Part shown: positions 10,271 to 59,639 of the stretch, piece by piece
Layout of the letters: every line of letters starts with the position of its first letter
How positions within the stretch are numbered: position 1 is the first letter of the stretch
Assembly: GCA_010909165.1 (NCBI GenBank)
Contig: VJWM01000011.1
Coordinates: 868,001-932,000 of the forward strand
Direction of reading: 5' to 3'
Source: Anthoceros angustus
Taxonomy: Eukaryota > Plantae > Anthocerotophyta
DNA length: 64,000 nt
The notes under the pieces: model-generated
Database searches by the model: none
What the model was told of the DNA's origin: nothing
What the model saw: only the letters and a program-made list of their open reading frames with translations
Program-made: the position numbers and the translations under genes

Positions 10271-10399
10271 TGTCGCGTGCCACACCCGCCACCGAAAGCT
10301 ACCCGACATCTGTTACACACTTCTATTTGACATTGAGATGAAAAGTATGGGTGACCAATCCATACGGAGTTAATGTGTAGCATGATCTGGGTGTGGTTT

Positions 10400-11215: not shown

Positions 11216-11734
11216 AAACGGACATGCCCCCACTCATTTGCCATGGCTTTTCTCCTCATCTCTAGAGACCAGGAGAAACAGAATCATCGTTTCCATTGCG
11301 GACTTTGCACATGAATAATCCCCTAAACAGAAAGAGAGAAATACGTTACCCATTTATGTCTTGTAGTGTATTAAAACCTAATTAAGTATTCTGAGAATGG
11401 CTGGGTCCAGCAGTGTAGGAGAGGCGGACATGGTGCATGTAAAAGTATGCGTGTACATAAGTACGTAAGGTGGCAGAGCCGGTTGCGGGTTGCCGACAGG
11501 TCGCTTTACAAGACCCCTGAAGACGGGTGGTGAGTGGGGGAGGGGGGGCTCCGGGCCCCGGGCCCCGGGGTCCGGGGCCCGCTCGGCGTGCTGTGCCGTC
11601 GACGTCGTCCAGTGGCATTTATGGGTGGCACTGTTGGGGATAAGACCCGAGGCCACTGCAAACTCTGGCACTCGCCATCATCACTGTACCTCCACCTCTG
11701 CTTTGCTGTGTCTTTGTGTGCGAAACGCAACGCC

Positions 11735-11850
11735 GGACACGGACACGGACACGGACACGGACAAAGACACGGGCTCGCCTTGTCTGCCTAACCGCCACCC
11801 TCGCATATGCATATATGTATGCCTATGTATATGTATATGCATATGCTTAT
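11735..11850. repeat. Adjacent hexamer microsatellites (GACACG)n and (ATATGY)n
   Basis: Read directly from the sequence. Confidence 0.85.
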
Positions 11851-29100: not shown

Positions 29101-31464
29101 CTTCCACTTCTGTAAGATTTTGACCGTTAACCTGCAAGACGGATGCCTCAGGATCCCTGCTATAGATGAAAAGGAAAGGTTTACAACCAGCTGACCTGAA
29201 ACGAAATCTAGCTTGCCCTACCTCAAAAGTCACTGGGCATGTAGTCCCTCTGCTTTGGTCGCACTGCAACTCCACATGAACAAAATTGATCAAGTATGGC
29301 CAGACAACACTACCGACCAAGCTAGATACACAAGGGTGCCGCCCTGCAGCAATGCAAGGCAAATCTTGACCGGACTTTGAAACCCAGCAGTTAACATGCC
29401 TGGATATATGGTGCATAGATGTCCTTCAGCGTTTGCTTCACATGGTTTTCCTTCCAGAGGTTGCCTTCCTTGTCCCCCCTTCTATCGAAAAAATCATACT
29501 GCTTTTGCAACCCAGTTATCTCTACCTGCAAAGAGTCAAAGATTTACCATCATCTCTCACCACAGGACATGGAGAATGGCTGATGCTAGAAAGAGCTGCC
29601 TGACTGCTGACCTTTGTAAAGCTACCACCGGGTGCTTTCTCATGTTCAGATTTAGACATCTTTCGAAGGTTCCCATTCACCTGGACCAGACCACAGGAGT
29701 GGGTCTATGAGCAAAATGTACGCCGACAAGCCACCTAATTCACTAGATTAAAGCACAGATTTCTCAAGAGCGCAACTTGTTTACCTCCCAAAACCTCTCC
29801 GCAGGCTCTTGCTTCAAGCGTCCCTTCAGCTTCTCGGGATCCAGCACCAGACTGCAAACCATCTTTGACTTGGAAGTCTTGGACCATACAGTCACCTTAC
29901 TGTAGGTGAACGTGTTAAGATATCATCGGGAGCAAGTCCAGCTTCTACAAAGAATCTGCTCCTCATGTACTTGACTGACCTTCCAAGGTGCAGAGCCGAA
30001 GCGACAGCTCCAGCGCCGTACTTTCCCAAGTATGGCTGCGCAGTAGCAAGGACCACGTTTCAAACACTGGGAGCAGTCCGCAAACGCACGAACGTGAAGC
30101 AACTGACTACACCACCCTGAGAATACCAGCAAGAAGGGCGGCGGCAGGTTTCTGCTCCCCATGGCTTGGTGGTGCACCTCTCGATGGCTCGAGCTCCCCA
30201 GAGTGCCCCTGCGTGTGAAACACCCCACTGCCATAAGTTCCCTCCCTGCACTGCCCAGCCCAGCCCAGCCCAGCCCACATCAACCTGTGGGTACGTGAGT
30301 CGAGCACGACAGCTCACCACTTTACAATGCAATTCTCGCCATCCTCAGCAGTCATCCCCTTCCCGTTGTCAAAGATGGTGACCTTGTCCCGTTCTATGTC
30401 CACACTGTAACAGCAACGCCCACATTCACTCAAACAAGAAGTTTCTGGGCTACGATTCAATGCCTGCCACCCAAGCTCCAACGGCCCATGAACCTGATCA
30501 GCCTCTGTATTCCCGTGTTCGTCCAAACGGCTTGGAGTGCATTATCCTGCAAGAAAGAAATTCCAAAACCCAACAGTGAGACACCCACGAATTCCAAGCA
30601 TTCCAACCCAGACAGCTCCCAGGCACGCACCACTTGGTCTGCCAGAGCTGTCTCCATCTTGTACCCCTGAGGTAGCCTCGTAAGCATAGCGGGCTCGGGA
30701 GTGACATTCCACAATTGCTGCACCCGTAGACCCACCACATCATCACACAGGCCACAAGGAACAAGAAAGTGACTAAACCACCTGATTGAAGAAAATCCAC
30801 GCACCTTGTCGCCATAATTAGCATCGGGCTTCCCATCAGCGAGCAGCAACATCCGGCTGCTCTCAGAAGAGGCGCAAAAGGCAGCAAATTCCTCCTGGGT
30901 CCGAATCGCCTCAACACGAGCGTCGCTGGGATCGTCCAGCCACGCTGAACTCCAGTCAATTTCCCTTCCCCGCTCCGAGGGCTCCCCGCTGCAGGACTCG
31001 AACCGCAGCCGGTCCAGAACCTCCTGCAGCGACGCGGGCCTGTCCCTGGCCACCTGCACCTTCACGGACGTGTAGTTGGGCAGCAGCACGTTGAGCTGCA
31101 GCCCGGGCAGGGGTGCGGGTGCGGGCATCAACGCCAGCCTCGCCTTCTTCCTCCTCGCATCCGCCTCCTCGGAATTGCGACCCAGCTCCAGCTTCCTCCT
31201 CGACTCCGAGGCCTCTGGAGTGCTCAGCACCTGCGACAGGCTCATAGTCCCCGGGCTCCCACTGCTCCTCTCCTGCCTGCGGCTGCTGCTGCTGCCAGCA
31301 GCAGCAGCAGGCCGCCCCATCGTCTCCACCCCTCGACCCCGCTGCTCCACACGCCGCCTGGTGTAAGCCCCAGACTGGGACTGGGACTGGGACTGGGACT
31401 GCGACTGGCACCGCCCACCAAGAATGGGCGGAGGCTCCGCTTCCTTGCCGCTCCCATCCTCCAT
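20124..31464 (-). CDS. GMI1: GMI1-like protein (N-terminal GHKL/HATPase, C-terminal SMC hinge; SMCHD1/DMS3-related), multi-exon
   Basis: N-terminus: LWNVTPEPAMLTRLPQGYKMETALADQVDNALQAVW...VTIFDNGKGMTAEDGENCIVKW (GHKL motifs I/II). C-terminal hinge: DVLGVVATLGRVEDDSL, CPPGFLGYAVNLI, GLRESLFF, GAVSLD, followed by a coiled coil. Many short GT-AG introns and several frameshifts are present. The 3' end is approximate. Confidence 0.88.
23362..25865. repeat. ~1.25-kb direct tandem duplication inside the GMI1-like gene
   Basis: 23362-24617 is almost identical to 24618-25865. ORFs 24189-24545 and 25431-25787 translate identically. CTTGATTG occurs at both ends and at the junction. Confidence 0.95.
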
Positions 31465-39345: not shown

Positions 39346-42300
39346 ATGGCGGATCCATCTCTTCCTGCCGGCGCCGCGCCGGTGGACCTGCTCCAGAGCC
39401 TCGAGTCCCGCTCGCCGCACCTGCGTGCTTTGCTTGCAGACCTGGAGTCCCACTCGCGAAAGCCGTCGGAACTGCCGTCTGTCGATTCGTGGGGAAGCTA
39501 CTTCAATTGCGACTGCGAGGACGGGGAATGTCACCACCGCGAGGAATGGCACTGGGAGGTGCGCTTGCGTCTGCTCACAGCTATGGGCAGATGCCGGTCG
39601 CTCAGGACAATTCAACTGAATCCTCTGCGGAAGAGGGGTCACAGCGTGAGGCAGAACGAGGCGGTGGCGCTCTTATCAGGCTTGCAACACAACTTTGGGC
39701 TGAGGGAGCTGGATCTGTATGGCTACAAGGGTTTTGGGACGGCAGAAGCCTGCCTGACGGCACTGATTGCCGTCATCGACAGAACTTTTTCCTCACTGGA
39801 ATCCCTCGGTCTGCAATATGTGGGATTGAGTGTAGAAGGCCTGGGTGCCATCGCTGCAGCCCTTGGACGCAATGCCAGCTCATCAGTGCTGTCCAGCTTG
39901 TCTCTGTGTGGGAACGACATTGGGAATGCTGTCGGGGCGCAACACTTGGCCGACATCCTTACCAACTCGCCCAAGCTCCGCACACTCTCGATGAGCAACA
40001 TAGGGATGGACGAGGAAGGAGCCGTGGTGATTGCACAGGCCCTGGCGCATACCACACTGGCTGGGCTTAGAATCGGAGATCCTGCGCCCCGGAATCCAAA
40101 CCAGCGCGCGCCCATGTTCCTCGTTCCACTGCTCCATGCTTTGGTGTGGCACACCGTGGCGGATCCTCCAGCTGCTGTTTCTGGCAATCACTCCATCACA
40201 CGGCTTGACCTTGGGTGTCCGGGAGGCCAGGAGGCTGTGGAGCCGGGGCTGGGAGAAGCCCTGGCTCGGGTGCTTCGCACCAACCGGGCTCTGAAAGACC
40301 TCAAACTATCCAGCTTCTTCGTCACACGCGGATTGGGAGCTCTGCGGAAAACAGCAGCATCACCAAACTCCGGGTGATTCACTCGCCGCAGTCGGAGGAT
40401 GATGACATGGATCCCATGCTGACCACCATCCTGGATGAGTGCAAGATTGTTGAGCAGGTGCAGATCCAGTTTGACAAGCCCTTTGGTCCGTCCAGCTTCA
40501 CCAAGGCGTTTTTCCAAGGGTTCCTGCAGAAAAACCGCAGCATCAAGAGGCTGGTGTTGGATGGCTGGGATGGGCTGGACGAGGAGATGTTTGAAGACCT
40601 GATTCAATCCCTGTCCACCAACACCAACAGCTATCTCAGGCTGGATCACATCTCCATCAAGGGCACCTCATGGGAAAAGCAAGGCAGGGGCGAACGTCTG
40701 CAGAAGCGTTGAGATGCATTGCGAGTGCAGCCGGAGCTGGGTGCGTTGCTTGCAGACCTGGAGTCCCACTCGCCAGTGCTGCAGAAGCGTTGGGAGCTGC
40801 GTGCGTTGCTCGCAGACTTGGAGGACCCTGTTGAAGCTACTTCAATTGCGACTGCGAGGACGGGGAATGTCACCACCGCGAGGAATGGCACTGGGAGGTG
40901 CGCTTGCGTCTGCTCACAGCTATGGGCAGATGCCGGTCGCTGAGGAAGATTCGACTGAATCCTCCGGGAGATGGGTCACAGCGTGAGGCAGGACGAGGCG
41001 CTGGCGCTCTTATCAGGCTTGCAACACAACCTTGTGCTGGAGGAGCTGAATCTGTATGGCTACAAGGGTTTTGGGACGCCAGCAGCCTGCCTGCAGTTGA
41101 GTGCCATCATGGACAGAACTCATCCTCACTGGACTTGCTCGGTCTGCAACATCTGGGATTGAGTGCAGAAGGACTGGGTGCCATCGCTGCAGCCCTTGGA
41201 CGCAATGCCAGCTCATCAGTGCTGTCCAGATTGTCTCTGTGGGAACGACATTGGGAATGCTGTCGGGGCGCAACACTTGGCCGACATCCTTACCAACTCG
41301 CCCAAGCTCCGCATACTCTGGATGAGCAACATAGGGATGGACGAGGAAGGAGCCGTGGTGATTGCACAGGCCCTGGCGCATACCACCACACTGGCTGGGC
41401 TCAGAATCGGAGATCCTGCGCCCCGGAATCCAAACCAGCCGCGCCCATGTTCCTCGTTCCACTTGCTCCAAGCTTTGGTGTGGCACACCCTGGCGGATCC
41501 TCCAGCTGCTGTTTCTGGCAATCACTCCATCACACGGCTTGTCCTTGGGTGTCCGGGAGGCCAGGAGGCTGTGGAGCCGGGTCTGGGAGAAGCCCTGGCT
41601 CAGGTGCTTCGCACCAACCGGGCTCTGAAAGACCTCAAACTATCCAGCTTCTTCGTCACACGCGGATTGGGAGCTCTGCGGGAAAACAGCAGCATCACCG
41701 AACTCTGGGTGATTCACTCGCCCCAGTCGGAGGATGATGACATGGATCCCATCCTGACCACCATCCTGGATGAGAGCGAGACTGTTGTGAGGGTGTGGAT
41801 CCGATTTGACAAGCCCTTTGGTCCGTCCAGCTTCACCAAGGCGTTTTTCCAAGGGTTCCTGCAGAAAAACCGAAGCATCGAGAGGCTGGTGTTGAATGGC
41901 TGGGATGGGCTGGACGAGGAGATGTTTGAAGACCTGATTCAATCCCTGTCCACCAACACCAACACCCACCTCAGGCTGGATCACATCTCCATCAAGGGCA
42001 CCTCATGGGAAAAGCAAGGCAGGGGCGAACGTCTGAGAAAGCGTTGAGAGATGCATTGCGAGTGCAGCCGGAGCTGCGTGCGTTGCTCGCAGACTTGGAG
42101 TCCCACTCGCCAGTGCTGCACTATCTGTGGATTTGTGGGAAGCTACTTCAATTGCGACTGCCAGGACAGGGAATGTCACCACCGCGAGGAATGGCACTGG
42201 GAGGTGCGCTTGCGTCTGCTCACAGCTATCGGCAGATGCCGGTCGCTGAGGAAGATTCATCTGAATCCTCCGGAAGAGGGTCACAGCGTGAGGAGGACGA

Positions 42301-45300
42301 GGCGCTGGCGCTCTTATCAGGCTTGCAACACAACCTTGTGCTGGAGGAGCTGAATCTGTTTGGCTACAAGGGGTTTGGGACGGCAGCCTGCCTGCAGGCA
42401 CTGATTGCCGTCATCGACAGAACTCATCGCTCACTGGACTTCCTCGGTCTGCAATCTGTGGGATTGAGTGCAGAAGGACTGGGTGCCATCGCTGCAGCCC
42501 TTGGACGCAATGTCAGCTCTTCAGTGCTGTCCAGATTGTCTCTGTGTGGGAACGACATCGGAATGCTGTCGGGGCGCAACACTTGGCCGACATCCTTACC
42601 AAGTCGCCCAAGCTCCGCAATCTGGATGAGCAACATAGGCATGGACGAGGAAGGAGCCGTGGTGATTGCACAGGCCCTGGCGCATACCACTACACTGGCT
42701 GGGCTTAGAATCGGAGATCCTGCCCCGGAATCCAAACCAGCCCGCGCCCATGTTCCTCGTTCCATTGCTCCAAGCTTTGGTGTGGCACACCTGGCGGATC
42801 CTCCAGCTGCTGTTTCTGGCAATCACTCCATCACACGGCTTGTCCTTGAGTGTCCGGGAGGCCAGGAGGCTGTGGAGCCGGGCTGGGAGAAGCCCTGGCT
42901 CAGGTGCTTCGCACCAACCGGGCTCTGAAAGACCTCAGACTATCCAGCTTCTTCGTCACACGCGGATTGGGAGCTCTGCGAAAACAGCAGCATCACCAAA
43001 CTCCTGGTGTTTCACTCGCGGCAGTCGGAGGATGATGACATGGATCCCATCCTGACCACCATCCTGGATGAGTGCAAGACTGTTGAGGAGGTGCAGATCC
43101 GGTTTGACAAGCCCTTTGGTCCGTCCAGCTTCACCAAGGCGTTTTTCAAGGGTTGCTGCAGAAAACCGCAGCATCAACAGGCTGGTGTTGGATGGCTGGG
43201 ATGGGCTGGACGACGAGATGTTTGAAGACCTGATTCAATCCCTGTCCACCAACACCAACACCCACCTCAGGCTGGATCACATCTCCATCAAGGGCACCTC
43301 ATGGGAAAAGCAAGGCAGGGGCGAACGTCTGGAGAAAGCGTTGGGAGCTGCGCGAGTGCAGCCGCAGCTGCGTGCGTTGCTCGCAGACTTGGAGTCCGAG
43401 TCGCCAGTGCTGCAAGAACTCCCATCTGTGGATTTGTGGGAAGCTATTTCGATTGCCTTTGCCAGGAGGCCTACAGGGAGTGTCAACACCGGGGCAGTGG
43501 CAGTGGTACGTACGCCTGCGCCTGCTCACAGCTATCGGCAAATGCCGGTCGCTGAGGAAGATTCATCTGAATCCTCCGGGAGGAGGGGCACAGCGTGAGG
43601 GAGGTAGAGGCGCTGGCGCTCTGCTATCAGGCTTGCAACACAACCTTGTGCTGGAGGAGCTGAATCTGTATGGCTACAAGGGGTTTGGGACGGCAGCCTG
43701 CCTGCAGGCACTGAGTGCCGTCATCGACAGAACTATCTCACTGGACTTGCTCGGTCTGCAATCTGTGGGATTGAGTGCAGAAGGACTGGGTGCCATCGCT
43801 GCAGCCCTTGGACGCAATGCCAGCTCAGTGCTGTCCAGATTGTCTCTGTGTGGGAACGACATCGGAATGCTGTCGGGCGCAACACTTGGCCGACATCCTT
43901 ACCAACTCGCCCAAGCTCCGCAATCTGGATGAGCAACATAGGCATGGACGAGGAAGGAGCCGTGGTGATTGCACAGGCCCTGGCGCATACCACTACACTG
44001 GCTGGGCTTAGAATCGGAGATCCTGCGCCCCGGAATCCAAACCAGCCCGCGCCCATGTTCCTCGTTCCATTGCTCCAAGCTTTGGTGTGGCACACCCTGG
44101 CGGATCCTCCAGCTGCTGTTTCTGGCAATCACTCCATCACACGGCTTGTCCTTGAGTGTCCGGGAGGCCAGGAGGCTGTGGAGCCAGGGCTGGGAGAAGC
44201 CCTGGCTCAGGTGCTTCGCACCAACCGGGCTCTGAAAGACCTCACACTATCCAGCTTCTTCGTCACACGCGGATTGGGAGCTCTGCGGGAAAACAGCAGC
44301 ATCACCAAACTCCTGGTGTTCCACTCGCGGCAGTCGGAGGATGATGACATGGATCCCATGCTGACCACCATCCTGGATGAGTGCAAGACTGTTGAGGAGG
44401 TGCAGATCCGGTTTGACAAGCCCTTTGGTCCGTCCAGCTTCACCAAGGCGTTTTTCAAGGGTTGCTGCAGAAAACCGCAGCATCAACAGGCTGGTGTTGG
44501 ATGGCTGGGATGGGCTGGACGACGAGATGTTTGAAGACCTGATTCAATCCCTGTCCACCAACACCAACACCCACCTCAGGCTGGATCACATCTCCATCAA
44601 GGGCACCTCATGGGAAAAGCAAGGCAGGGGCGAACGTCTGGAGAGAGCGTTGTTAGCTGCGCGGCTGCAGCCGGAGCTGGCTGCCTTGCTTGCAGACTGG
44701 GAGTTGGGTGCGTTGCTCGCAGACTTGGAGTCCGAGTCGCCAGTGCTGCAAGAACTCCCATCTGTGGATTTGTGGGAAGCTATTTCGATTGCCTTTGCCA
44801 GGAGGCCTACAGGAGTGTCAACACCGGGGCAGTGGCAGTGGTACGTACGCCTGCGCCTGCTCACAGCTATCGGCAAATGCCGGTCGCTGAGGAAGATTCA
44901 TCTGAATCCTCCGGGAGGATGGGCACTTACAGCGTGAGGGAGGTAGAGGCGCTGGTGCTGCTATCAGGCTTGCAACACAACTCTGTGCTGGAGGAGCTGG
45001 GGCTGTTTGGCTACGTGGGCTTTGGGACGGCACGCTGCCTGCAGGCACTGACTGGCGTCGTGGAGAGAGCTTATGTCTCATTGGACTTGCTGGATCTGCG
45101 ATATCTGGGATTGAGTGCAGAAGGACTGGGTGTCATCGCTGCAGCCCTTGGACGCAACGGCAGCTCAGTGCTGTCCAGATTGCGTCTTTGTGGGAACGAC
45201 ATCAGGAATGCTGTCGGGCGCAACATTTGGCCGACATCCTGAGGAATTCGATCGCCCTCCGCAATCTCTGGATGAGCAATATTGGCATGGATGAGGAAGG

Positions 45301-48300
45301 AGCCGTGCTGATTGCAGAGGCCCTGGCGAATACCACCACCCTGATCCGAGCTTAGAATCGGAGATCCTGTGTTCATTGGTCCAATTCTCGAAGCTTTGGT
45401 GTGGCACACCTGGTGGATCCTCCAGCTGCTGTTTCTGGCAATCACTCCATCACAGGCTTGTTCTTGAGTGCCCAGGAGGCCAGCAGGCCGTGGAGCCAGG
45501 ACTGGGAGAAGCCCTGGCTCAGGTGCTGCGCACCAACCGTGCTCTCACTGACCTCAGACTTGCCAGCTTCTTCGTCACACGCGGATTGGAAGCGCTACCT
45601 GAAAACAGCAGCATCACCCAACTCCAAGTAAGTCACACGCGGAATTCGGAGGATGATGACATGGATCCTATGCTGATCACGATTCTTCAGGAGTGCAAGA
45701 ATGTCCAGCAGCTGCAGCTTCAGTTTATAAGCCCTTTGGTCCATCCAACTTCTCCAAGGCGTTTTTCCAAGGGTTGCGGGATAATCGTAGCATCAAGACG
45801 CTTGTGTTGGATGACTGCGAAGGATTGGATGACTACATGTTCCAGAACTTGATGCGGTCTCTGGGACGCAACTGCAACAACGTCCTGGAGAACATTTCCA
45901 TCAAGAAAACAACCTGGGAAAGCGAAGGCAAAGGAATATACATCCAGAATGCTCTCTCAAGGAACATGCGCAGAAGAAGCGCTGCTCCGCATGGTAGGTG
46001 CCCCAAGCCAGTAGCTAGCTACCCTTGTCCTGATTTGTATCTACAGTCAGAACCCACAAACTCAGATGTATACTGACCCCTTCTCACTTGTGCAGGTTCG
46101 GAAGAAGTGCCACCACCGGTCACGGCAACTGTGGCAACCTCTGATGCCGCAGCAGGTAATGAAACTACATGAATCCATGGATTTGATCCAACCACTTCCA
46201 AGCTGTTGTTGTTGTTGCAACTAGTTTGAATGCCTGTACCGAATGCACCACTTGATGCTGCTGCTGGCAGGCAGTCTGATGATTGACTGATTGGCTGTCT
46301 TTGTTTTCACCACAATTTCCAGTTGCTGTTCCTGAGGAGCTCAGTACCCTGCTTGCCGACCTCGACTCACCTTCGCCACACTCAGTAGTCTTCCTCGTGT
46401 GAAGCGTTTGGGCACTTGTTCAAGAGGGACGTGGAACATCCAAAGGTGGAACTTGAACTGCGCATGCGCCTTATGAAGGCTATCGGAAATGCCCCACACT
46501 CAGATTCATAGATCTCGACCCTCTTGGGCGTCGAAATTACAGGGTGACGGTGGCAGAGGCGATGGCGCTGCTGGAAGGCCTGAGCTCGAATGCAATAGTG
46601 GAACGGCTGGACTTGAGTGGCTTCCTTGGTTTTGGAACAGGTGAAGTCTGCGCTGCAATCGCCGCTATCTTGCAATCCAGCCGCACCTTGCAATTTCTGA
46701 ATATGGGATACACTGGCATGACTGTCGAAGGACTGGCTTGCATGCGAAATAATAGCAGCACTGTGCTTCGCACCTTGAACCTTTCTGGAAACACGACTGT
46801 TGGAGAAGGTGTAGGAGCTCAACACCTGGCTAATATCCTGACCAGCACTCCCGCGCTTCGCCACCTGGGGATGTGGGATATAGGGATGGATGAGGCGGGA
46901 GCATTGATGATAGGGGATGCTCTGGCACAGAACACCACACTTGACAGGCTGGACATAGGATTTAATCAAGCGTCAAGGCCAAACCAGGCAGGGATGATGG
47001 CCACGCTGTTAGTTCGAGCATTCCTCCCTACCAAATTTCTTTCTGGTAACAAGTCTGTCACACATCTCGGGCTGAAAGTATGGGAAGCAGGACAGCCTGT
47101 CATCCCTGAATTGCGAGAAGCTGTGGCCGCACGCTTCATGGGAACCATACTTGGAGGCATCTCGATGTATGTACCTGCTTTATAAGGCAGGGATTGGAGG
47201 GCTGTGTGACAACAGCAGCGTTATCCGTGTGACAGTCCGACATGGTAGCTCTAGTGCTGAGGAACAAGGGATGTGCAATCCTGCAGACAGTGGAAAAGTT
47301 TACAATTAGCTCAGAACAGTTTGGGACCTTTGGGATCATCCGACCTCCCAAGACGTTTTCAAATCGTTGCAGGACAATCGTTACCTCAACAGGTTGGTGT
47401 TGGATGGCTGGAAAGGGTTGGACGACAATATGTTCCAAGACCTGTTGCGGGCTCTGCAAGTGAACACCAATTTGAAGAGTATATCGTTCGAGAACACTGT
47501 GTGGAAAAGTCAGGAAAAGGAGCTGCAGTGGATGAACTACTACGCCAAAACAGGGAATACCGGAAAGCTCTGGCAGGGGCTCCAACAATGCCAGTGAAAT
47601 CATGTCGCCTCGTACTTTGTGGATTTCCATATGCAGGTGAGCACATGCTGAACCCAAAGTTTGTACATCCCAAATGGCGTAGTTTGTCAGACTTCACTGC
47701 AGTTGTTTCTGTCTTCTCACATCTGTTTTCTTGTCTTTATTGCCGTTGTTTTCGTCTCCGAGTGTAATCGGTGGTAAATGTTGCTGTTTCAGGAAAACCA
47801 CGATACGGAATACGTTGATGAGTATGCAAACACACGAAAACGATGTTGAGATGGAGGGTGAAACGATTTCGAAGCACATACCTCGAACCCTTGGGTTTGA
47901 GGTTGAGGTGATAAAAGATGGTCCAGCCTTGAGAATTACCGTTTGGGATCTTGCAGGGCACCAGGAGTTTCATGCTCTTCACGATTTCGTCTTTCCTGCT
48001 GTGAATAACTCTTCTCTCTTCTTGTTTGTCTATAACCCGTTCAAATTTGGTGGTAATTATTCAAGTGCGGAAATGAAGGATAGAAAGGATTTTCGAGATG
48101 AATTTATTTATTGGCTTAAATTTATTGCTTCCAACTCGCGGTTAGCTCAACAGGTGAAACCTTATGTTCATGTGGTGGTAACATTTGGTGACAAGCTTGA
48201 AGGTAGGATGTCTTCTTGAAATCTGAGGAAGTGTTGGTGATGAAGAAAAGTTCATGGCTGTTGTGGAAACATCCAATGAACCCACTTTCATCAATGGACA

Positions 48301-51300
48301 AAGTTGGAAAGATGTGTGTATACGCAGCCTTATAGAGGAAAAGCTACAACAACGTATTAGCATTGGCCCCAATTCCCAATATTTGTGAGCAGACCCGTAC
48401 ATGTACAAAGATGGGCTGAGGATCAACAAGGTATGCCAATCATTTCTGAGAAGTTTAGTGAGTTGTTTTAGCACATGTAAGGTGGCAGCATCCACTCATC
48501 TCGGAGGATTATGAAGATTTCTTAGAGACTTCATGGACAAAAGAGGATAGCTGGAAAGTAGTAGCATCATATCTCAAGGATTCAGGGGAGATCATATATT
48601 TTCAGATGTCGGAACTGATGGTCATCAATCTCCAATGGCTAGGAATGGGAGTTTTGGTCAGCTGATTAGTATATTTGGTGAACGGACAATAGCAGATTGG
48701 CTTCAAGTTCAAAATGGGTTTATCAGCAAATATGGGTTGAGTAGCCTTCTAAAATGTCTTTGAACAAGGTAGGGCTTGATGAAACCATTGTGAGCGAGGA
48801 AAAATTCATCCAACTGATGTGTGAGTTGCACCTTTGCATGAAAGTGGAGATGAGGAAGGAGAAGTGCGTTATTTTGTTCCAATATGTATGTATAAAGAAG
48901 AAGATTTATTAGGAGTTGATCAGCTTAGTATGGCCTTCACACGGTGGTAATCTTCATGATTATATCTTTATGGGTTTGCGTCTACAATGTGATGATCAAG
49001 ATTGTACATTCCTCACACCAGGATTTTTCCCTAGGTTACAGGTTGTAACTTTTCTCAAGTTGAATATCTTTTGTTTTATGTCCTGAAACTTCTTCTTTGT
49101 TTTATTATTATTAACTAGTCTCATTGTTCCTATATATTGTAGGTACTTTTATACACATATTGTTTGAAAATGAAGTGGGTTGATGAGGATAGACGAGGTG
49201 ATTCAGGAATAAAACTACAGCCTAATGTCCTTTTAATATCTGCAGAGGCAATGGATATCTTTGTGGAATTTAATGCCAAAGTGGGTTGTTACATAGATAT
49301 ATTGGCCCGATCTACTCAAGGCTATTTAGAGTCCATGTCATTTTGAAGGAACATATTGTATCTCGATTCGGGCATTTTGTGCTTCGCATGAGGGTTGTGC
49401 AGGGGTCACACTAGTTGAAGGTGTTCTTCGACATGAATGTGTAGCGTCCCTCACTCTATGCAGATACAGGAGATACGAGTGTATCCTGACGAACGAGCTA
49501 GTTGAAAGGGTGGCTGCTGCAAAAGATCAACGTCGTGCACACTCCACGCAATCTTGGAAGCCTGTTAGCGACAGCAACACCCTGGGCGATCCAATCATTT
49601 TAAAGGCCAACCATGAGTATGCAACGGTGGTGGATGGCCATGTCATTTTGGGACGAAAAGAGGACCTTGCCAAAGCCGAAGCAGAGTTCCAAGGTTTGAA
49701 GCTCTCAATTCTGTGGATAGTTTGTGTTGCAGTAGGTGTCCTTCTTCTCTTCACAAGTAGTTTCTAAGTAGCTTTGCACAAGTAGGCCGTTTCTTGCATA
49801 CTCTAAGGCTATACCTGTTGCAGGATTGAAATCCAGTAGTAGTTGCTTTGGTGGAACTCCTACACAGCTATCCCCGCAAGTAGGGAAGCTTGTGCGAAAG
49901 AGCAACTTGTTGAGTAGCCTTCTAAAATGTCTTTGAACAAGGTAGGGCTTGATGAAACCAATGTGAGCGAGGAAAAATTCATCCAATTAATGTGTGAGTT
50001 GCACCTTTGCTATGAAAGTGGAGATGTGGACGGAAAAACTCAATATTTTGTTCCAATAAGTATGTATAAAGAAGAAGATTTATTAGGAGTTGATCAACAG
50101 TTAGTATGGCCTTCACAGAGTCTGGATCATGATTATATCTTTATGGGTTTGCGTTTACAATGTGATGATCAAGATTGTACATTCCTCACACCAGGATTTT
50201 TTCCTAGGTTACAGGTTCGTAACTTTTCTAAAGTTGAATATCTTTTGTTTTATGTCCCTGAAAACTTATTCTTTAGTTTTTATCATTATTAACTACTGAC
50301 TAGTCTCATTGTTCCTATATATTGTAGGTTTTTTATACAAATATTGTTTGAAAATGAAGTGGGTTGATGAGGATAGACGAGGTGATTCAGGAATAAAACT
50401 ACAGCCTAATGTCCTTTTAATATCTGCAGAGGCAATGGATATCTTTGTGGAATTTAATGCCAAAGTGGGTTGTTACATAGATATATTGGCCCGATCTACT
50501 CAAGGCTATTTAGAGTCATGTCATTTTGAAGGAACATATTGTATCTCGATTCGGGCATTTTGTGCTTCGTATGAGGGTTGTGCAGGTCACATTGGTTGAA
50601 GGTGTTCTTCGACATGAATGTGGCATCCCTCACTCTATGCGACATAGGAGACACGAGTGTATCGACATAAGCTAGTTGAAAGCGGTGGCTGCAAAGGATC
50701 CGTCTGCACACTCCACGCAATCTTGGAGCGCACTGGGCGATCACTATTTTAAAGGCCAACCGAGAGTATGCAACGGTGGTGGATGGCCGCGTCATTTTGG
50801 GACAAAAAGAGGACCTTGCCAAAGCCGAAGCAGAGTTCCAAGGTTTGAAGCTCTCAATTCTGTGGATAGTTTGTGTTGCACTAGGTGTCCTTCTTCTCTT
50901 CACAAGTAGTTTCTAAGTAGCTTTGCACAAGTAGGCCGTTTCTTGCATACTCTAAGGCTATACCTGTTGCAGGATTGAAATCCAGTAGTAGTTGCTTTGG
51001 TGGAACTCCTACACAGCTATCCCCGCAAGTAGGGAAGCTTGTGCGAAAGAGCAACTTGATTTGAGTAGTTATCCTAACTCTAGCAGTATGGAAGAAGGTA
51101 ATCGAAGAGGTTTGGCAGTGGTTGTGAGTGCGGAAGAGGACAGACCGGGAGGATCTGTAGACAGAGGGCGACTTGATTTTCTTTTCAACACATTGGGCTT
51201 TCATACTGATTTTTAGTGGACAGTTCTGACAGTGTCAAAGCACACATGAGGAAAGTTGCCGATCTCTCTGCCCTTGAAAAGGACGATTGCTTTGTGTGTT

Positions 51301-51848
51301 GCATCAATGCTCATGGGGGGATTGAAGAAAATGGCAGAGACTACATTGAAATTGGAAAACCACCCCGGGAGAAGCTATATGTTTACGATGACATCGTGAA
51401 GCCCATTTGTGAATCCAAGTGGTTGAAAGACAAGCCTAAGGTGTTTCTGATCAATGCTTGTCGAGCCATCCAAAGTGGGAAAGCTAAGGACTCTGAAGTC
51501 GAGGGTAGCCAAATTGTGAGTGAGAGAGCCGGAGAAGATCTACGCCTGCTTTCTGAGAAGGATTGTCTCACCTTCTTCTCGACCAGTCATGGACAACAAT
51601 CGTTCAGAGATGTCAACAATGGCTCAAACTTTATCATAGCTTTGATGGAAGCCATCATTCAGGGGTCGGAAAGAAAGGATGATATGTTCAGCATTTTAAC
51701 ATCAGTGATTGCCAAGGTCACGGAGATGCCATGTTGGCTCCGAAATCAAGAAGGGTCCTATGAGAAGATACCCCAGTGTCCGGTGTTTTCCTCCACACTC
51801 ACGAGAAAGCTTTGGTGGTGGCCTCGGTGTGGCCATGTTCCTTCATAA
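39346..51848 (+). CDS. Giant TORNADO1-like ROCO protein: (LRR module)x6 - Roc GTPase - COR (duplicated) - caspase (peptidase C14A-like); frameshifted in this assembly
   Basis: ATG at 39346 (MADPSLPAG), then RI-like LRR modules. The Roc has P-loop CGFPYAG|KTT across intron 47637-47792, G2 RTLG, G3 WDLAGHQEFHALHD and YWLKFIASNS...VVVTFGDK. The COR has GLRLQCDDQDCTFLTPGFFPRLQV, a TRN1-like motif. The C-terminus is a caspase. All parts are on one strand and colinear. A continuous frame requires correcting many 1-2 nt indels. Confidence 0.75.
39420..45970 (+). repeat. Five tandem ~1.3-kb coding repeats (each ~430 aa of ribonuclease-inhibitor-like LRRs)
   Basis: Units start at about 39420, 40740, 42075, 43370 and 44705. 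Each runs LRALLADLES...VRLRLLTA.G.CRSLR.I.LN...GAQHLADIL...GMDEEGAVVIAQAL...EDDDMDP...ISIKGTSWE. A diverged sixth unit lies at about 46330-47560. Confidence 0.95.
47590..48300 (+). other. Roc (Ras of complex proteins) GTPase domain
   Basis: GxxxxGKT split by an intron (GFPYAG/KTT), RTxG switch I, WDLAG G3, and a TFGDK G4-like motif. Confidence 0.88.
48737..51068 (+). repeat. ~1.17-kb tandem duplication of the COR-coding region
   Basis: 48737-49910 matches 49911-51068. TTGAGTAG occurs at both ends and the junction. The copies differ by real substitutions (GDEEGEVRYF vs GDVDGKTQYF). Confidence 0.93.
51061..51848 (+). other. Caspase (CASc, p20+p10) catalytic domain
   Basis: RGLAVVV...DRPGGSVDRGRLDFLFNTLGF; DCFVCCINAHG (His codon 51312); LKDKPKVFLINACRA (Cys codon 51459); DCLTFFSTSHGQQSFRDVNNGSNFIIAL; ILTSV; PQCPVFSSTLTRKLWW. 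One -1 indel lies in a T-run at about 51210. Confidence 0.92.
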
Positions 51849-52435
51849 TAACCGGATTGTAATAGAATCATCGTTCCCAGCAAGACACTGTTGGTGCAGC
51901 GAATTGCTTCTAATATGGTCTTCTCATTTGTCCTTTTCTGTTCATTTCTTATTTAGGTTCGCACACAATTTGGATGATAAACGACTCCTTCTGTGGATGA
52001 ACCTGTAGGTGAGAGCTCATGGACTGTAAGGAGGAAAGAATGAGGGAGTTGTGGAGCTGTAGTTTAAGAAAGCAAGTCCAGATTTAAGCGTTCCTCTTAT
52101 CGAATGACTTCTAGTCCTTTTGCATACAAGATGTGTGTTCCATCTTCCTGAGCAGTCCATGCATGAACAGGATGTCCCTCACTTAAATCGCGTCTGAGGC
52201 TTGCCATCCTGTCCCTCACTTAAATCACGTCCGAGGCTTGCCTTTCTTTCACGAGGACAAAAGACAGAGCGCGGACAGTAGGTCATATGGTGCCAAACCA
52301 TCGTCTCCGGTGTTAGGGCTATGGAATTTTCGCTGTTGAAATCTGGATTAGGTTACTTTTCATGCATCACCGACAACACGAACTTGTTTGTAAGGTAGTG
52401 CTGTCCTTCCGGTTGTGCTGACGTCATCCATCATC

Positions 52436-54005
52436 TGCATGTATGCTGCCTGCGGGAGGTTGGAGGATGCGTTGCAGGTTTTTAATGGATTGGCTGCTCC
52501 CAATTCTTATTCGTGGTCCTCCATAACGGAAGCAGATGTTGGCAATGTACAGGCCAGGCAGGCAATCGAGATCTATTTGAGGATGCGACAGTCATCCCCT
52601 ATGCTGGCAGATAATCATCTGTTTGTGGCAACACTTAAGGCTTGAGCCAGTGCAGAAGATCTGACATCAAGGAGACAGGTCCATGTCGATGTCCTGAATA
52701 GTGTGCTTGAGCCTGATGTATTTGTCAGGAGCTGCCTGGAGGAAATGTATGCAAGATGTGGGAGGTTGGATGATGCTCGCACGATCTTTGACAAGTTGGA
52801 CTGGAGAATGTGGTCACATGGAATACGCTGCTTGGAGGGTATGCAGGGTGGGCGTGGGCAAGAAGCCCTTGCGCTCTATGCAAGTATGCAAGAGGAGGGA
52901 ATCACTCTACCTGACCCTGTCACGTTTTTGTGCCTCCTCAAAGCATGTGGTAGCAGTGGAACACAACACCAGGGAGTGCAGCTTCATTCACAAATACAGG
53001 AAGCAGGTCTCGGATCTGAGGTGATGGTGGGAAGCTGCCTCGTAGATATGTATGCAAGATGTGGAAGCTTGGATGATGCCCGGACTGCCTTTGACAACAT
53101 GACCAGAAGAAATGTGGTGACCTGGAACGTGATGCTCGCAGCATATGCTGATCGTGGGCTAGGTGAAGAAGCCCTGTCTCTTTATGCAACAATGCAACAA
53201 GAGGACGTTACTTCAGCAGATGACATAACTTTTGTGTGCATTCTGAAAGCATGTAAAAGCATCGGGCCATTGGAGCAGGGAAGGCAGCTACATGACAAGT
53301 TTCAGGAGATGGGGCTGCAAGTTGACGTGGTCATTTCGAGCTGCCTGGTGGACATATATGCAAACTGTGGAAGCTTAGAGGATGCCCGCAGGGTGTTTGA
53401 CGAGTCAGCCACAAGAGATGGCAGTGTATGGTCAGCACGGGATGGGTCAGGAAGCTCTCATGTGCTACGACAAAATGGTGGTGGTAGGCATCTGGTGTGG
53501 GAAGGTTTGCAGTACTTCAAATCCATGAACAGATATCACGGGATAGCTCCCAGAGCTGAGCACTATGTCTGTATGATAGATCTCCTGGGACGTGCTGGAC
53601 GCTTCAAAGTGGTAGAAGAGCTCTTGTCAAGTATGCCGATGCAGCCTACTCTTTCCTTTCCATGTTGATGTCTCTGCTGGGCTTCCTGCAGGAAGCACAG
53701 TAATGTATCTCTCGCGGAGAACAAGTCTTCGATCTGGCGGTGCGTCTGCAGCCCACAAATGCCGCAGCATACATGTTGATGTCATAGATGTACGCTGATG
53801 CGGGCCTTCCAGAGGACGCCCATAGGGTGGACAAGCGCAGGAAGACGGAAAGTGCTGCGTGGAAAGAGCCAGGCTGGAGCTGGATAGCGCATCCCGAGAA
53901 AGTGTATGACATGTTAGCCGAGGTAACCTGTAAGCTTAAGGAGGCAGCACAGGCAAAGCAGAGCGTGTGCTCGGTATCCTCATCTCTGTCCGAGGGTCCC
54001 TCATG
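52436..54005 (+). pseudogene. Second copy of the PLS-class PPR (E-type) gene, with stops and deletions
   Basis: Paralogous to 36760-38650. Motifs include MVGSCLVDMYARCGSLDDARTAFDNMTRRNVVTWNVML, PRAEHYVCMIDLLGRAG and KEPGWSWI. In-frame TAA and TAG stops occur in the E domain. Confidence 0.85.
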
Positions 54006-54019
54006 ATGCGTCCCTCTGC

Positions 54020-56107
54020 CCTCTACTACGTGCAGGTCTTGGGAAATGGATGGTGAGCATTGCTTCTGGGAGGCTACGTGCATCCACGCAAAGACAGCTC
54101 ACCTTGAGAGCATCAGGTGGCACAGGAATATACCTGTTCTGTTGCACATAGCAGTCTTGGTGAGATGAAAGAGCATTGCTTGACGTGGTGAAAAACGAGC
54201 CCAGCAAACAGTGTACGGATTCGGGCTGGACATCTCGCCTCCTTGAAACTATGGAATTCAGAGACAGCTTGTCAGGAGTCGGTCTCATCCGGTTCCTTTC
54301 ATGGACGAAAGAGAGAGATTGCAGTGGCACTCCTGAGGCTGAAAGCCACTCACAAGGCAGCCGACGAAGCACAGAAAAATGTAGTCCGAAACCACTGATG
54401 TCAGGAATGCCTTGTCGTGCAAAGTCTACAGTGTACACAGGTGTGTAACAAGTGGCTAGAGAGGCGGCTTCGCAGGCGTGCAGAAGTTGCTCCACTGCAC
54501 GCTTCTCCGCGCCGCTGGCCAGCACTGGGCCAGCAGGTGTGGATTCGAGTCTCTCTGGAGTGGGATGTTGTGGGTTCTGCTTGGCTTCTTTTGCAAGTCC
54601 TCCTGACAAGGTGGGACGTTGTTGTGAAGGTTGGGCTATGGCGGATCCATCTCTTCCTGCCGGCGCCGCGCCGGTGGACCTGTTGCAGAGCCTCGAGTCC
54701 CGCTCGCCGCAGCTGCGTGCTTTGCTTGCAGACCTGGAGTCCTCCTGCCGTCTGTCGATTCGTGGGAAGCTACTTCAATTGTGACTGCGAGGACGGGGAA
54801 TGTCACCACCGCGAGGAATGGCACTGGGAGGTGCGCTTGCGTCTGCTCACAGCTATGGGCAGATGCGGGTCGGTCAGGAGGATTCGACTGAATCCTCTGC
54901 GGAAGAGGGTCACAGCGTGAGGCAGGACGAGGCGGTGGCGCTCTTATCAGGCTTGCAACACAACCTTGGGCTGAGGGAGCTGGATCTGTTTGGCTACAAG
55001 GGTTTTGGGACGGCAGCAGCCTGCCTGCAGTTGAGTGCCATCATGGACAGAACTCATCCCCCTCTACTACGTGCAGGTCTTGGGAAATGGATGGTGAGCA
55101 TTGCTTCTGGGAGGCTACGTGCATCCACGCAAAGACAGCTCACCTTGAGAGCATCAGGTGGCACAGGAATATACCTGTTCTGTTGCACATAGCAGTCTTG
55201 GTGAGATGAAAGAGCATTGCTTGACGTGGTGAAAAACGAGCCCAGCAAACAGTGTACGGATTCGGGCTGGACATCTCGCCTCCTTGAAACTATGGAATTC
55301 AGAGACAGCTTGTCAGGAGTCGGTCTCATCCGGTTCCTTTCATGGACGAAAGAGAGATTGCAGTGGCACTCCTGAGGCTGAAAGCCACTCACAAGGCAGC
55401 CGACGAAGCACAGAAAAATGTAGTCCGAAACCACTGATGTCAGGAATGCCTTGTCGTGCAAAGTCTACAGTGTACACAGGTGTGTAACAAGTGGCTAGAG
55501 GCGGCTTCGCAGGCGTGCAGAAGTTGCTCCACTGCACGCTTCTCCGCGCCGCTGGCCAGCACTGGGCCAGCAGGTGTGGATTCGAGTCTCTGGAGTGGGA
55601 TGTTGTGGGTTCTGCTTGGCTTCTTTTGCAAGTCCTCCTGACAAGGTGGGACGTTGTTGTGAAGGTTGGGCTATGGCGGATCCATCTCTTCCTGCCGGCG
55701 CCGCGCCGGTGGACCTGTTGCAGAGCCTCGAGTCCCGCTCGCCGCAGCTGCGTGCTTTGCTTGCAGACCTGGAGTCCTCCTGCCGTCTGTCGATTCGTGG
55801 GGAAGCTACTTCAATTGTGACTGCGAGGACGGGGAATGTCACCACCGCGAGGAATGGCACTGGGAGGTGCGCTTGCGTCTGCTCACAGCTATGGGCAGAT
55901 GCGGGTCGGTCAGGAGGATTCGACTGAATCCTCTGCGGAAGAGGGGTCACAGCGTGAGGCAGGACGAGGCGGTGGCGCTCTTATCAGGCTTGCAACACAA
56001 CCTTGGGCTGAGGGAGCTGGATCTGTTTGGCTACAAGGGTTTTGGGACGGCAGCAGCCTGCCTGCAGTTGAGTGCCATCATGGACAGAACTCATCCCCCA
56101 CTCTACT
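54020..56107. repeat. ~1.04-kb direct tandem duplication (upstream region plus first part of LRR gene)
   Basis: 54020-55060 matches 55061-56107. CTCTACT occurs at both ends and the junction. Confidence 0.93.
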
Positions 56108-56600
56108 CCCTCGGTCTGCAATATGTGGAATTGAGTGCAGAAGGCCTGGGTACCATCGCTGCAGCCCTTGGACGCAATGTCATCTTATCAGAGTCTGGAA
56201 GCCACAGTGGGCTGTCCGCATTGTCTCTGTGTGGGAAGGACATCGGGAATGTTGTCGGGGCGCAACACTTGGCCGACATCCTTACCAACTCGCCCAACCT
56301 CCGCAGACTCTCAATGAGCAACATAGGTATGGACGAGGAAGGAGCCGTGGTGATTGCACAGGCCCTGGCGCATACCACCACACTGGCCGAGCTCACAATC
56401 GGAGATCCTGCGCCCTGGAATCCAATGTGGCCACGTGGAGTACGCTGCTTGCAGATTAATGCTCAGGGCGGCCGTGGGCAAGAAGCCCTTGCCCTCCATG
56501 CTAGGATGCAAGAGGAGGGAATCCGTCTGCCTGGTCAGCCATGTCATGTTTGTGTGCCTCCTAAACGCATAGAGCCCTACACCAGGGGCGGCAGCTTCAT
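54638..56600 (+). pseudogene. Truncated paralogues of the ROCO LRR N-terminus (starts at 54638 and 55673); the second is fused to a PPR fragment
   Basis: Identical MADPSLPAGAAPVDLLQSLESRSP start. LRR homology stops at about 56424, where PPR-derived sequence (NVATWSTLLA / QGGRGQEALALHARMQEEGI) begins. Confidence 0.85.
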
Positions 56601-58099
56601 TCACAAATTTATGAAGCAGGAGTGGGATGAAAGAGCGGATTCTCGACAAAGCAGGTGCTTGACTCCGATGTGAGATGAAAGAGCGGAAGATGCGTCACGT
56701 TTCTGAATCCAGTTCGCAGTGTTCAGTACGGATAGGATGGATAACACGAATTCCTGACCAGACATCTCCTTGCAAGAATGTATCCTTTCCTGGAAGGCCC
56801 AGTCATCCACGAGACATAGTTGGTAGTGGAGCTGTCCTCCCAAGTCCGAACCCCTTGCTCCACTCACAAGATGCTGCATGCCTCCGGTTGTCTGTTGACA
56901 GGAATCTTCTTGACTATACTGCGGGCTTGGTGGTGAGAGATTGAAAGAGCGGTGCTTGACAGACTCGGCAAAGAGATGAACTCTTCAAGTTCTGATCCCG
57001 GTTCAGAGTGTACTGTACGGATTGGGTGAACAATATGGAATTCGGACAACACCTGGCAGCGATTCATCCCTTGATGGAAGACCGGTTGCCACCAGAGACA
57101 TCGTAGTGGAGCCCTCCTCCGAAGTTGAACCCCTTTCTCCACTCACGAGATTCTGCAGGCCTCGTACTGTATGTATGTAACCTGCACACGTAGTGAGATG
57201 TTGACTTGAATGAATTACGAGGACTGGTTGTGAAAGTGTATTTTTGAAGCTTTTGGCTGCAGATTTGAGGTGCTTAGGCAGGGAGGTACATGGGAGGGAA
57301 ATTTGAATGGTCAGCCTGAGTCAAAGCCTACAGAACGACTCTCTGCTTCTTTCCCAGTAGAGGAGGCACTACATCAATTTCCATATTTGCTGCTGTCCCA
57401 GCCATAATTCTCATAGCAAATTTGTCGTTGAACGGTTCAAGTGTGGAAGCGTCTCTTCTCATAGCCCTGCACTAAGCATATCAGGCTTTAAACTCTGCCA
57501 AGCAGACGTCCAATACGAATTGCAAATGTTCATTACATATACCTACCAGAACAGATCGGCGGGGCCGATAAACATGTATTGCTTCATCCTTCATCCGGGT
57601 GTGCGCAGGGCCGCAGGCTGCATCCGATTTATTTGCGAAGCATCTCCAGGGCTGGTAGGCTGGTTGGAGCGCATCCAAATCTGGTTGGACCAGAGCCCGG
57701 TCCTCATTTCCTTTATCAGCGCCACCACATACTGCGACAATAAGCTCACCATTGTGGTGCTGCTGTGGAAATGCGCAGAGGAAACAAATGATGTTTGATG
57801 CCTTTGCTCTTCATTGAAATGTAACCAGCGTACCTAAGGCTCGCTATACACGTATGTACACCTAGTCTACTTCAAAGTGATAAAGTGATTGCTGCCGGCA
57901 GTTCAGCGTGTGCAAGCACTGATTGCTTTCTGAAGATCGCAGGCCCTGTAAGGAATGGAAGCCGGCTTTTGGGACGGATGGACAGGGTGGACAATATCGA
58001 AATCAGACAACACCTCGCAGGGGTTCGTCCTTCCCTGGAAGGCCCCGCCGTCCACAAGAGACATAGTAGGCCGGGGAGCCCTCCTCCGAAATCCCCAGC

Positions 58100-59470
58100 T
58101 TGGATAAGCTAGATGTGCAGGGAGTTGAGGTGAGCGTGGAAGGCCTGGCTCATATCTCCGCAGCCTTGCGAGACAACAACAGTGGCTCATTTCTCCGCAA
58201 GTTGTGCCTCGATCGCACCTACATAGAGAATGCTGCAGGGGCGGGGCACGTAGCCGGCATCCTCACCCACTCGCCTGTGCTGCGAACCTTGGGGTTGTCC
58301 GGGATAGGAATGGATGATGCGAGCGCCGCGGTGATTGCCAACGCTGTGGCCCGCAGCACCACACTAACAAGGCTCGCCATCGGGTATGACCGGCATGCGC
58401 AGGAGAACCTTGAGCAGGCAGCCAGGTTGATTCCTCTCTTGACAGCCTCCTCCAGCTCGGACGCGGAGCCCAGACTATTCAACCAATCCATCACCAATCT
58501 CTGGCTCTGGCTCTAGCTCGAGGTAACCGGGGTGCCAGGAGGAGGCAAGGATAGCGCTGCGGAGGCTGTGCTCGCGGAAGCCATGGCTGTAATGCTTTGC
58601 TCCAACACCACTTTGAAGGTTCTGAATATACATATCCAGCTTTCTTGTGACCCTCGGCTTGTCCGCACTGCCTCACATCAGCAGCATCCTTGGCACTTCA
58701 ATTGCACCACCACCATTCCCTGGATGAGGAGGAGCTGGATCCTGCGCTGCTGCAAATCCTGCACAGGTGCGCGAACCTGGATATGCTGGGACTCCAGTTC
58801 ATGAAACCCTACGGGAGCAAGTCCATCAAGGAGCTGTTCACGCACAACAACCCTAGCATCGAGGTGCTGGCGTTGGATGGTTGGGATGGCCTGGACGACC
58901 ACATGTTGGAGGACCTAGTTCGATCTCTTTCCACCACCTCTCCGGCGTTGGCACTCTTATCGAGCTTGCAACACAACCCTGTGCTGCAGCAGCTGGGTTG
59001 GAGTGGCTACATGGGCTTTGCGACGACACCAGCTTGCGTGCAGGCACTGTCGGCCGCCATCCACAAATCTTCTCTCTCATTAGTGTACCTGCGTTTTCAG
59101 GGTGTGGGATTGTGTGCACAAGGGCTGGGTGACATCGTTCCACCCCTTGGACGCAACGGCACCGTAGTCCTGTGCAAATTTGCTCTAGATCCGAGTGGGA
59201 ACGATCACGCCGGATCACAATCGTCCTCCGGATCCTGCATTCCATCGCTCAATCACACAGCTTTTTCTTGAGTGTCCGGGAGGCCAGCAGGCCGTGGAGC
59301 CGGGGTTGGGAGAAGCCCTGGCTCGCGTGCTTCGATCCAACCGTGCTCTGGATCAGCTCTCAATTGACAGATTCTTCGTCACGCGGATTGTGGGAACTGG
59401 CTTTGTGCAGCTGAAGCTTCTTCAGGATGACACTTACCTGTACCTGGAATCGTTTGTGCTGAATTTTACA
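58100..59470 (+). pseudogene. Diverged, internally deleted LRR modules of the same TRN1-like family
   Basis: VEGLAHISAALRDN...GAGHVAGILTHSPVLRTLGLSGIGMDD, LALDGWDGLDDHMLEDLVRSLST and ECPGGQQAVEPGLGEALARVLRSNRAL. No Roc or COR follows. Confidence 0.8.
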
Positions 59471-59639
59471 ACCTGTTGTCAGAGCTTGATCGAGGTTGAA
59501 GGCCGAGATCAATCACCTCGAAGGAAGAGCGAAACCCTGACACGATCCCAGCGTGCTCCGAGAGCGAGAGCAAGTTGCGGAACTGTGTAAAGCATGATTG
59601 TGGCCAATACCACAGAACTCGGTTAGCACCCTGGCGCCA

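Follow-up and report, generated by a model that had tools for sequence, protein, structure and literature searches.

In bacteria, systems in which leucine-rich repeats (LRRs) are followed by an AP-GTPase (Roc), a COR domain and an effector have been catalogued with at least 24 C-terminal effectors, a caspase included (Kaur et al. 2021, PMC8195603, Fig. 6D). In plants, only one or two Roco genes have been reported (PMC11378527), and caspases are, according to reviews, absent from plant genomes (PMC9950082). In this study, we analyzed a 64,000-nucleotide stretch of the genome of the hornwort Anthoceros angustus (contig VJWM01000011.1, positions 868,001 to 932,000; hereafter the window, whose positions are used throughout), in which six LRR modules of ~1.3 kb, a Roc GTPase domain, a COR domain with a doubled 3' part and an animal-type caspase domain follow one another, all on the + strand. 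With a probability of roughly 0.6, this locus is a member of an expanded and transcribed family of single-chain LRR-Roc-COR-caspase proteins of a non-seed land plant, which would serve as immune receptors inside the cell and be the GTPase-based counterpart of an NLR or inflammasome; the immune-receptor role is the part of this reading that we infer.

The plant family shares with the bacterial systems the order of rapidly evolving LRRs, Roc, COR and a variable C-terminal effector, the occurrence of several paralogues per genome, and a predicted role against invaders (PMC8195603). Unlike those systems, it is eukaryotic, contains introns and ~1.3-kb LRR macro-repeats, and carries an animal-type protease (p20 and p10, with an Arg-lined S1 pocket). 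The original prediction, which was made from the letters of the window, had known of no description of this architecture in plants. This holds in so far as no paper on a plant Roco-caspase or a bryophyte caspase was found in the literature searched, which left out most subscription papers, but the layout itself had already been catalogued in bacteria. With TRN1, the locus has in common ribonuclease-inhibitor-like LRRs followed by Roc-COR in a plant (PMC4104024, PMC11378527). However, TRN1 is a developmental gene of one or two copies without a protease, whereas here we found an expanded family, with six LRR modules in this copy and a caspase after COR. Brown-algal and other SAR ROCOs are also eukaryotic LRR-Roc-COR proteins proposed to be variable immune receptors, and their group 3 has a C-terminal protease (PMC11378527; PMC3341825). 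In those proteins, however, the protease is of the IPR009003 type instead of a caspase, and diversity arises by shuffling of LRR exons instead of multi-repeat modules. IPR009003 is the trypsin-like clan PA.

The effector resembles animal caspases (MEROPS C14A; caspase-8, -9, -3 and -7) in its fold, its His-Gly and A-C-R motifs, its equivalents of Arg179 and Arg341, and the order p20-linker-p10. It differs from them in having NACR instead of QACRG, in lacking CARD or DED, in being attached to its own sensor and switch, and in belonging to a branch apart from the sampled animal caspases. In its presumed way of working, the protein would be similar to plant NLRs and to animal inflammasomes or apoptosomes, with a repeat sensor, a nucleotide switch and induced proximity of effectors. 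In contrast to NLRs, its switch is a Ras-like Roc GTPase, with no STAND (NB-ARC/NACHT) ATPase, and its effector is C-terminal and covalently attached; judged by its sequence, the Roco-caspase is not an NLR. Liverwort alpha/beta-hydrolase-caspases, which are known from database labels, have a caspase of the same plant branch with another N-terminal partner.

Fusion of COR and caspase

The domain order on one strand given in the original prediction was borne out by self-BLAST, by Pfam profiles and by collinearity with the contigs L001 and L002; in these searches the spliced model was used exon by exon and piece by piece. COR and the caspase are ~245 nt apart. The intron proposed between them (GT 50843 to AG 50972) exists, as it is spliced at the same place and in the proposed frame in the RNA of a paralogue. 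This paralogue contig (depth 484; contig depth was not taken as expression level) continues past the last codon of COR and enters the linker in an open frame, and 40 of its letters at the junction correspond to 40 in the spliced model of the window, 24 of which are identical. L002, a Logan short-read contig from the unrelated run SRR33208241, contains the end of the LRRs, the P-loop intron, a Roc-COR exon, and the COR end with the caspase. In its 459-codon open frame, the end of COR is joined to a whole caspase whose dyad is intact. The introns of L002 are located at the same two places as in the window (P-loop and RLQ|V), and the contig carries a single COR. In L001, a second paralogue from the same run, the COR end and the caspase are also found in one open reading frame (ORF). 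Because COR is spliced to the linker exon in the RNA of a paralogue and both contigs hold the two domains in one ORF, the fusion is real at the level of the family. The idea of a single LRR-Roc-COR-caspase gene is supported at that level, and more tentatively for this copy. It had also been proposed that one intron and one missing base give a continuous frame; the intron exists and the break at ~51058 is present in the assembly, but a second break at ~51213, inside the caspase, makes them insufficient. Little weight can be given to the argument from the phase at the COR duplication junction, since one phase in three would agree by chance and run X2 gives hardly any coverage of the junction bin.

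An alternative acceptor at 51014-51016, with which COR would run in frame into the caspase even if no base were restored at 51058, was rejected in view of the upstream acceptor used by the paralogue RNA. Retention of the COR-caspase intron (50843-50916, and also 49694-49767) would close the frame after a short hydrophobic tail, which possibly represents a caspase-less, membrane-anchored isoform or merely a T-rich intron. Run SRR33208241 contains at least three plant-branch caspase genes, two of them fused to Roco; in L034:932-2047, the caspase is followed by a helical C-terminal extension.

The caspase domain and its relatives

The ORF at 51216-51848 matches PF00656 with an E value of 1.6e-23. 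The catalytic dyad is kept (His in NAHG at 51312, Cys in NACR at 51459), as is the basic S1 pocket for Asp, with the equivalents of Arg179 and Arg341 placed by alignment at 51142, upstream of the break at ~51213, and at 51606, respectively. A KAKD|S site is present in the inter-subunit linker. The top 50 Foldseek matches of the window caspase model were caspases throughout, and the PDB sequence and fold matches listed for it were animal caspases only. For P0011, the intact relative encoded by L002, the structural ranking gave VIA Z values of 24-28 for caspases, 22 for MALT1 and 18-19 for metacaspases. A metacaspase identity was ruled out by the Arg residues at the S1 positions, in place of an acidic pocket, and by the lower structural scores. 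The sequence thus places the domain in the caspase type, and cleavage after Asp and activation by dimerization are predicted.

The nearest of 150 matches among 1.8 billion representatives were not animal sequences but two transcripts of Nothoceros, proteins of Marchantia and Riccia, and contigs; by identity, the closest caspase was that of the hornwort Nothoceros. In an unrooted IQ-TREE phylogeny, for which a subset of the animal rows was used and two long rows were left out, the window caspase and the hornwort, liverwort and other plant-like caspases formed one branch with support of 100/99, apart from all animal rows. With the two long rows included in a FastTree run, also unrooted, support for the plant branch was 89. 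Both shared ancestry with the animal caspases and an old transfer are compatible with these trees. Metagenome matches were animal-type caspases without Roc or COR. Close relatives of either domain were not detected in bacterial genomes, plasmids or viral contigs by searches that detect close relatives only. A full-length Roco-caspase protein was not found in the homologous-protein searches, in which the long proteins were only liverwort hydrolase-caspases and the others were P0011, P0014 or the query itself.

Caspases of this branch are located behind alpha/beta-hydrolases in liverwort fusion proteins. In addition, caspase exons were found directly ahead of NB-ARC-LRR exons in L003:1855-5564 and 7538-12643 (JGI 3300056830), L036:591-6749 and L033:10001-18614; some of these pairs are separated by an exon resembling alpha/beta-hydrolases. 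A GT-AG splice in L003 would link caspase and NB-ARC in frame; a second L003 caspase lacks the catalytic His. These arrangements are candidate caspase-NLRs, with an N-terminal class not found in the NLR literature searched. Hydrolases are known effector domains of bryophyte NLRs (PMC10952240, PMC11218826). Since the caspase branch sits both on hydrolases and before NB-ARC-LRR, it appears to behave as a mobile immune effector.

In liverworts, P0020 (Marchantia Mp6g00900/Mp6g00860), P0066, P0159-P0163 and P0073 have two or three SERAC1-like alpha/beta-hydrolase domains followed by a caspase with an intact dyad; Mp6g00900 has been automatically named 'Caspase family p20 domain-containing protein' in UniRef, which is a label only. 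A divergent caspase, P0122, is located downstream of TPR-like exons in L035:2907-8867, from the same JGI sample as L033, and has a long branch of unsure placement.

Roc, COR and LRR modules

Roc matches PF08477 (E 7.6e-6 at 47791-48216) with 26.6 bits, slightly below the 27-bit cut-off. Its closest PDB match is the Roc domain of LRRK2, and the G1, G3 and G4 motifs are present. The P-loop GFPYAG|KTT spans an intron that is spliced in RNA run X1, and the RNA implies that the assembly is without one G at the acceptor of this intron. COR gave weak matches to Pfam COR-A (E 0.003 and 0.2). The region is collinear with L001 and L002, and the Roc-COR exon of L002 was placed among Atlas Roc/COR-A clusters at 0.95. 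Profile and fold searches with the C-terminal half of COR (COR-B) gave no match, and the corresponding part of the P0011 structure model had low confidence and no fold match; a lectin identity of this piece was rejected, as the Atlas match was below threshold. The COR motifs may resemble those of TRN1, in line with the TRN1-type COR of the original prediction; this resemblance is a lead. With Roc directly followed by COR, the protein is by its domain order a Roco protein, for which GTP binding and hydrolysis and a dimer cycle are predicted. The 3' two thirds of COR are duplicated together with the intron and the linker (48736-49917 and 49909-51068, 91.6% identical); the two copies differ by true substitutions and many small deletions, and the junction carries a short microhomology.

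Self-BLAST placed the starts of the LRR modules at about 39346, 40780, 42067, 43361, 44705 and 46323. Modules 1-5 are 78-94% identical, each with at least 11 LxxLxL strands, and because many substitutions separate them they are real repeats. The variable positions are concentrated on the exposed face of the strands (21/55, compared with 34/295 elsewhere, P 6e-6; buried positions 1/33), and pairwise ratios of nonsynonymous to synonymous substitution among modules 1-4 ranged from 0.8 to 2.0, with small counts. Such variability at exposed positions is a signature of ligand-binding immune repeats. Coordinates of all features are given in Table 1.

Table 1. Parts of the Roco-caspase locus, in window positions
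Feature	Position	Strand	Remarks
LRR macro-module 1	39346..40780	+	probable start ATG 39346; ~12 ribonuclease-inhibitor-like repeats
LRR macro-module 2	40781..42066	+	approximate boundaries
LRR macro-module 3	42067..43360	+	
LRR macro-module 4	43361..44704	+	
LRR macro-module 5	44705..45993	+	more divergent
Putative phase-1 GT-AG intron, joining modules 5 and 6 in frame	45994..46322	+	inferred from sequence
LRR macro-module 6	46323..47596	+	most divergent; Pfam LRR_6 E 1.8e-6
Roc GTPase domain	47597..48330	+	P-loop split by intron 47637-47792; G3 WDLAG; G4-like TFGDK
COR copy 1	48331..49693	+	RNA-spliced intron at 49042-49142; 49374-49685 identical to an RNA contig
First copy of COR-caspase intron (49694-49823) and linker exon, leading into COR copy 2	49694..49908	+	
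COR copy 2	49909..50842	+	tandem duplicate of 48736-49693, 91.6% identical; intron 50215-50327
Phase-1 intron from COR to caspase exon	50843..50972	+	same place spliced in paralogue transcript
Ser-rich linker	50973..51087	+	1-nt break at ~51058
Animal-type caspase domain (p20 and p10)	51088..51848	+	stop 51846-51848; RNA contig identical over 51300-51601

Proposed mechanism and implications

Initiator caspases are activated by induced proximity. COR mediates dimerization of Roco proteins (PMC4104024). In the proposed mechanism, a ligand derived from an invader would bind the variable LRR surface and shift the nucleotide cycle of Roc, and thereby the balance between COR monomer and dimer. Two C-terminal caspase domains would be brought together and might cleave themselves in the inter-subunit linker at the KAKD|S site, and the active protease could then cut substrates at Asp sites, resulting in cell death or defence. 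The immune-sensor role suggested in the original prediction gained indirect support from the exposed variability of the LRRs and from the presence of the same caspase family on NLR-like genes. However, the simple chain from ligand through COR dimer to caspase needs to be qualified, since the best-studied Roco protein, that of C. tepidum, is a monomer with GTP and a dimer with GDP or without nucleotide (PMC6337361); the GTP switch might therefore work in either direction.

In a broader and more tentative reading, to which we give somewhat less than an even chance, an old and undescribed branch of true Asp-specific caspases has been retained in non-seed land plants as modular effectors of immunity on Roco GTPases, NLRs and hydrolases, and the Roco-caspase would be an inflammasome analogue complete in one protein and gated by its own GTPase, which would kill cells, perhaps by way of a gasdermin of the plant. 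If expressed and expanded Roco-caspases do belong to a caspase branch that reaches hornworts and liverworts, the statement that plants have no caspases would be overturned for non-seed plants, and the old question of plant caspases would become directly testable; the hydrolase-caspases of Marchantia are a ready test object in a model plant. The family would also be a eukaryotic example of the LRR-Roc-COR-effector defence systems that have so far been predicted in bacteria, and it would offer a simple protease read-out for the question of monomer versus dimer signalling in Roco proteins (the LRRK2 family).

Integrity of this copy and alternative explanations

Besides the behavior of C. tepidum Roco, several observations weigh against an intact immune receptor at this locus. 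Gln283 of QACRG is not kept in the caspase; Asn is found at 51453, as in most plant-branch caspases, and NAC also occurs in some animal-type metagenome caspases. Because of this replacement, Asp specificity is a prediction. The catalytic Cys has been lost in P0014, the relative encoded by L001. None of the RNA contigs listed extends from the COR of this copy to its caspase core, and the RNA indels listed include no base at 51058 or 51213. The RNA contigs that restore the frame are mostly paralogues with further differences. At 50123/50127/50782, no RNA agrees exactly with COR copy 2, and the DNA depth in run X2 is near zero at the COR duplication junction. Finally, some deletions are common to modules 3 and 4, which fits a systematic error but also inheritance after decay.

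The most serious alternative is that other loci of the genome hold functional members of a real fusion family, while this copy is a recently dead and rearranged pseudogene, its COR doubled by unequal crossover, in a birth-and-death array amid broken PPR genes. As assembled, this copy contains roughly 50 frame-breaking indels, 28 of them in the cores of modules 1-5 and at least 12 more between module 6 and the caspase. The true substitutions between the COR copies, the deletions that modules 3 and 4 have in common, the broken PPR genes in the flanks and two truncated repeats of the 5' end of the gene at 54.0-56.4 kb are all consistent with decay, and the inserted base at 47512 was present in only 6 of 303 depth units of run X2, although the placement of this gap is ambiguous. 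In contrast, the 249 substitutions among modules 1-5 include no nonsense change, where 7.2 would be expected (P 7e-4). Moreover, 23 of the 28 indels in these modules are 1-2-nt deletions, mainly within short runs, a strong bias typical of long-read consensus. RNA contigs restore a base at many of the breaks, and at 6 of the 12 sites listed every covering contig does so. This copy is also matched by RNA contigs without any difference at 49374-49685 and 51300-51601, and almost without difference at 47792-48186. Single-copy ORFs of 430-470 amino acids are open in the window, and the repeated regions are rich in 1-2-nt frame breaks. The lack of nonsense changes, the deletion bias and the bases restored by RNA together suggest that the repeats diverged under coding constraint, and that the breaks are errors or very recent. 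Most of them are probably unpolished long-read deletions in repeated DNA. We consider a dead copy to be possible but doubtful, and we see about even odds of function for precisely this copy, in which COR is doubled.

It is also conceivable, although we hold it to be unlikely, that the COR duplication, and perhaps that of some LRR modules, is a mis-assembly of two paralogues. In this case the true gene would have one COR, and the architecture would hold but not the copy numbers. Whereas COR copy 1 had an X2 depth of 15-17, the depth was 1.5 for the bin at the junction and 0.7-1.3 for 50628-51025; the RNA is exact to COR copy 1 and not to copy 2, and L002 has only one COR. However, runs X1 and X2 may come from another individual, reads or contigs from identical stretches may all have been placed on a single copy, and the microhomology at the junction is as found in real tandem duplications. 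The LRR modules, furthermore, differ by too many substitutions to be anything but real repeats.

A third possibility is a role in development, in which the protein would act like TORNADO1 as a scaffold or switch, with the caspase as a non-lethal processing protease or a dimerization partner instead of an immune executioner. Arabidopsis TRN1, the only plant Roco that has been studied, acts in patterning (PMC4104024), the relative P0014 is without its catalytic Cys, and the family is well represented in one RNA run, in which contigs give no expression level. Expansion of the family, tandem amplification of the LRRs and variation biased to the surface are, in contrast, typical of arms-race receptors, and the same caspase family is found on NLR-like and hydrolase genes, and we regard a developmental role as improbable.

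It is very improbable that the caspase is a separate gene, starting from ATG 51088 and lying next to a Roco gene whose reading frame would be closed within the retained intron (stop 50914-50916). This ATG is located just ahead of the first strand of the caspase, stand-alone plant caspase ORFs exist (P0005, P0008 and P0017), and unspliced read-through would end in the hydrophobic tail. However, the two domains are close to each other, the RNA depth drops across the intron, and both the paralogue splicing and the shared ORFs of L001 and L002 argue for one gene. Animal contamination or recent gene transfer, to which the best structural and many sequence matches to animal caspases could point, can practically be dismissed given the grouping with plant-like caspases apart from the animal rows and the setting of the caspase, which is part of a plant gene with spliced introns and has ANTH, F-box and PPR genes of plant type around it.

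Flanking regions

The window is plant nuclear DNA; among the genes that flank the locus, the ANTH gene is intact, the F-box sequence is a fragment and some of the PPR genes are broken. Two tandem copies (53987-55070 and 55060-56425, 99% identical) consist of the 3' end of a PPR gene, the upstream region and the start of module 1; in the second, a single ORF (55666-56673) runs from LRRs into a PPR fragment. The PPR gene and the Roco gene appear to duplicate as a unit, and 36754-37337 matches 52432-53008. Another relic of an LRR module of the same family, far more diverged and broken, is located at 57900-59590. Elsewhere in the window, a near-perfect 1.25-kb tandem duplication (23363-25866, 98.9%) lies within a multi-exon gene on the - strand, whose exons at 21871-23169 and 30457-31464 gave no Pfam match and may resemble GMI1/SMC-hinge proteins. 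A diverged tandem array of ~39-bp units is found at 6133-6867.

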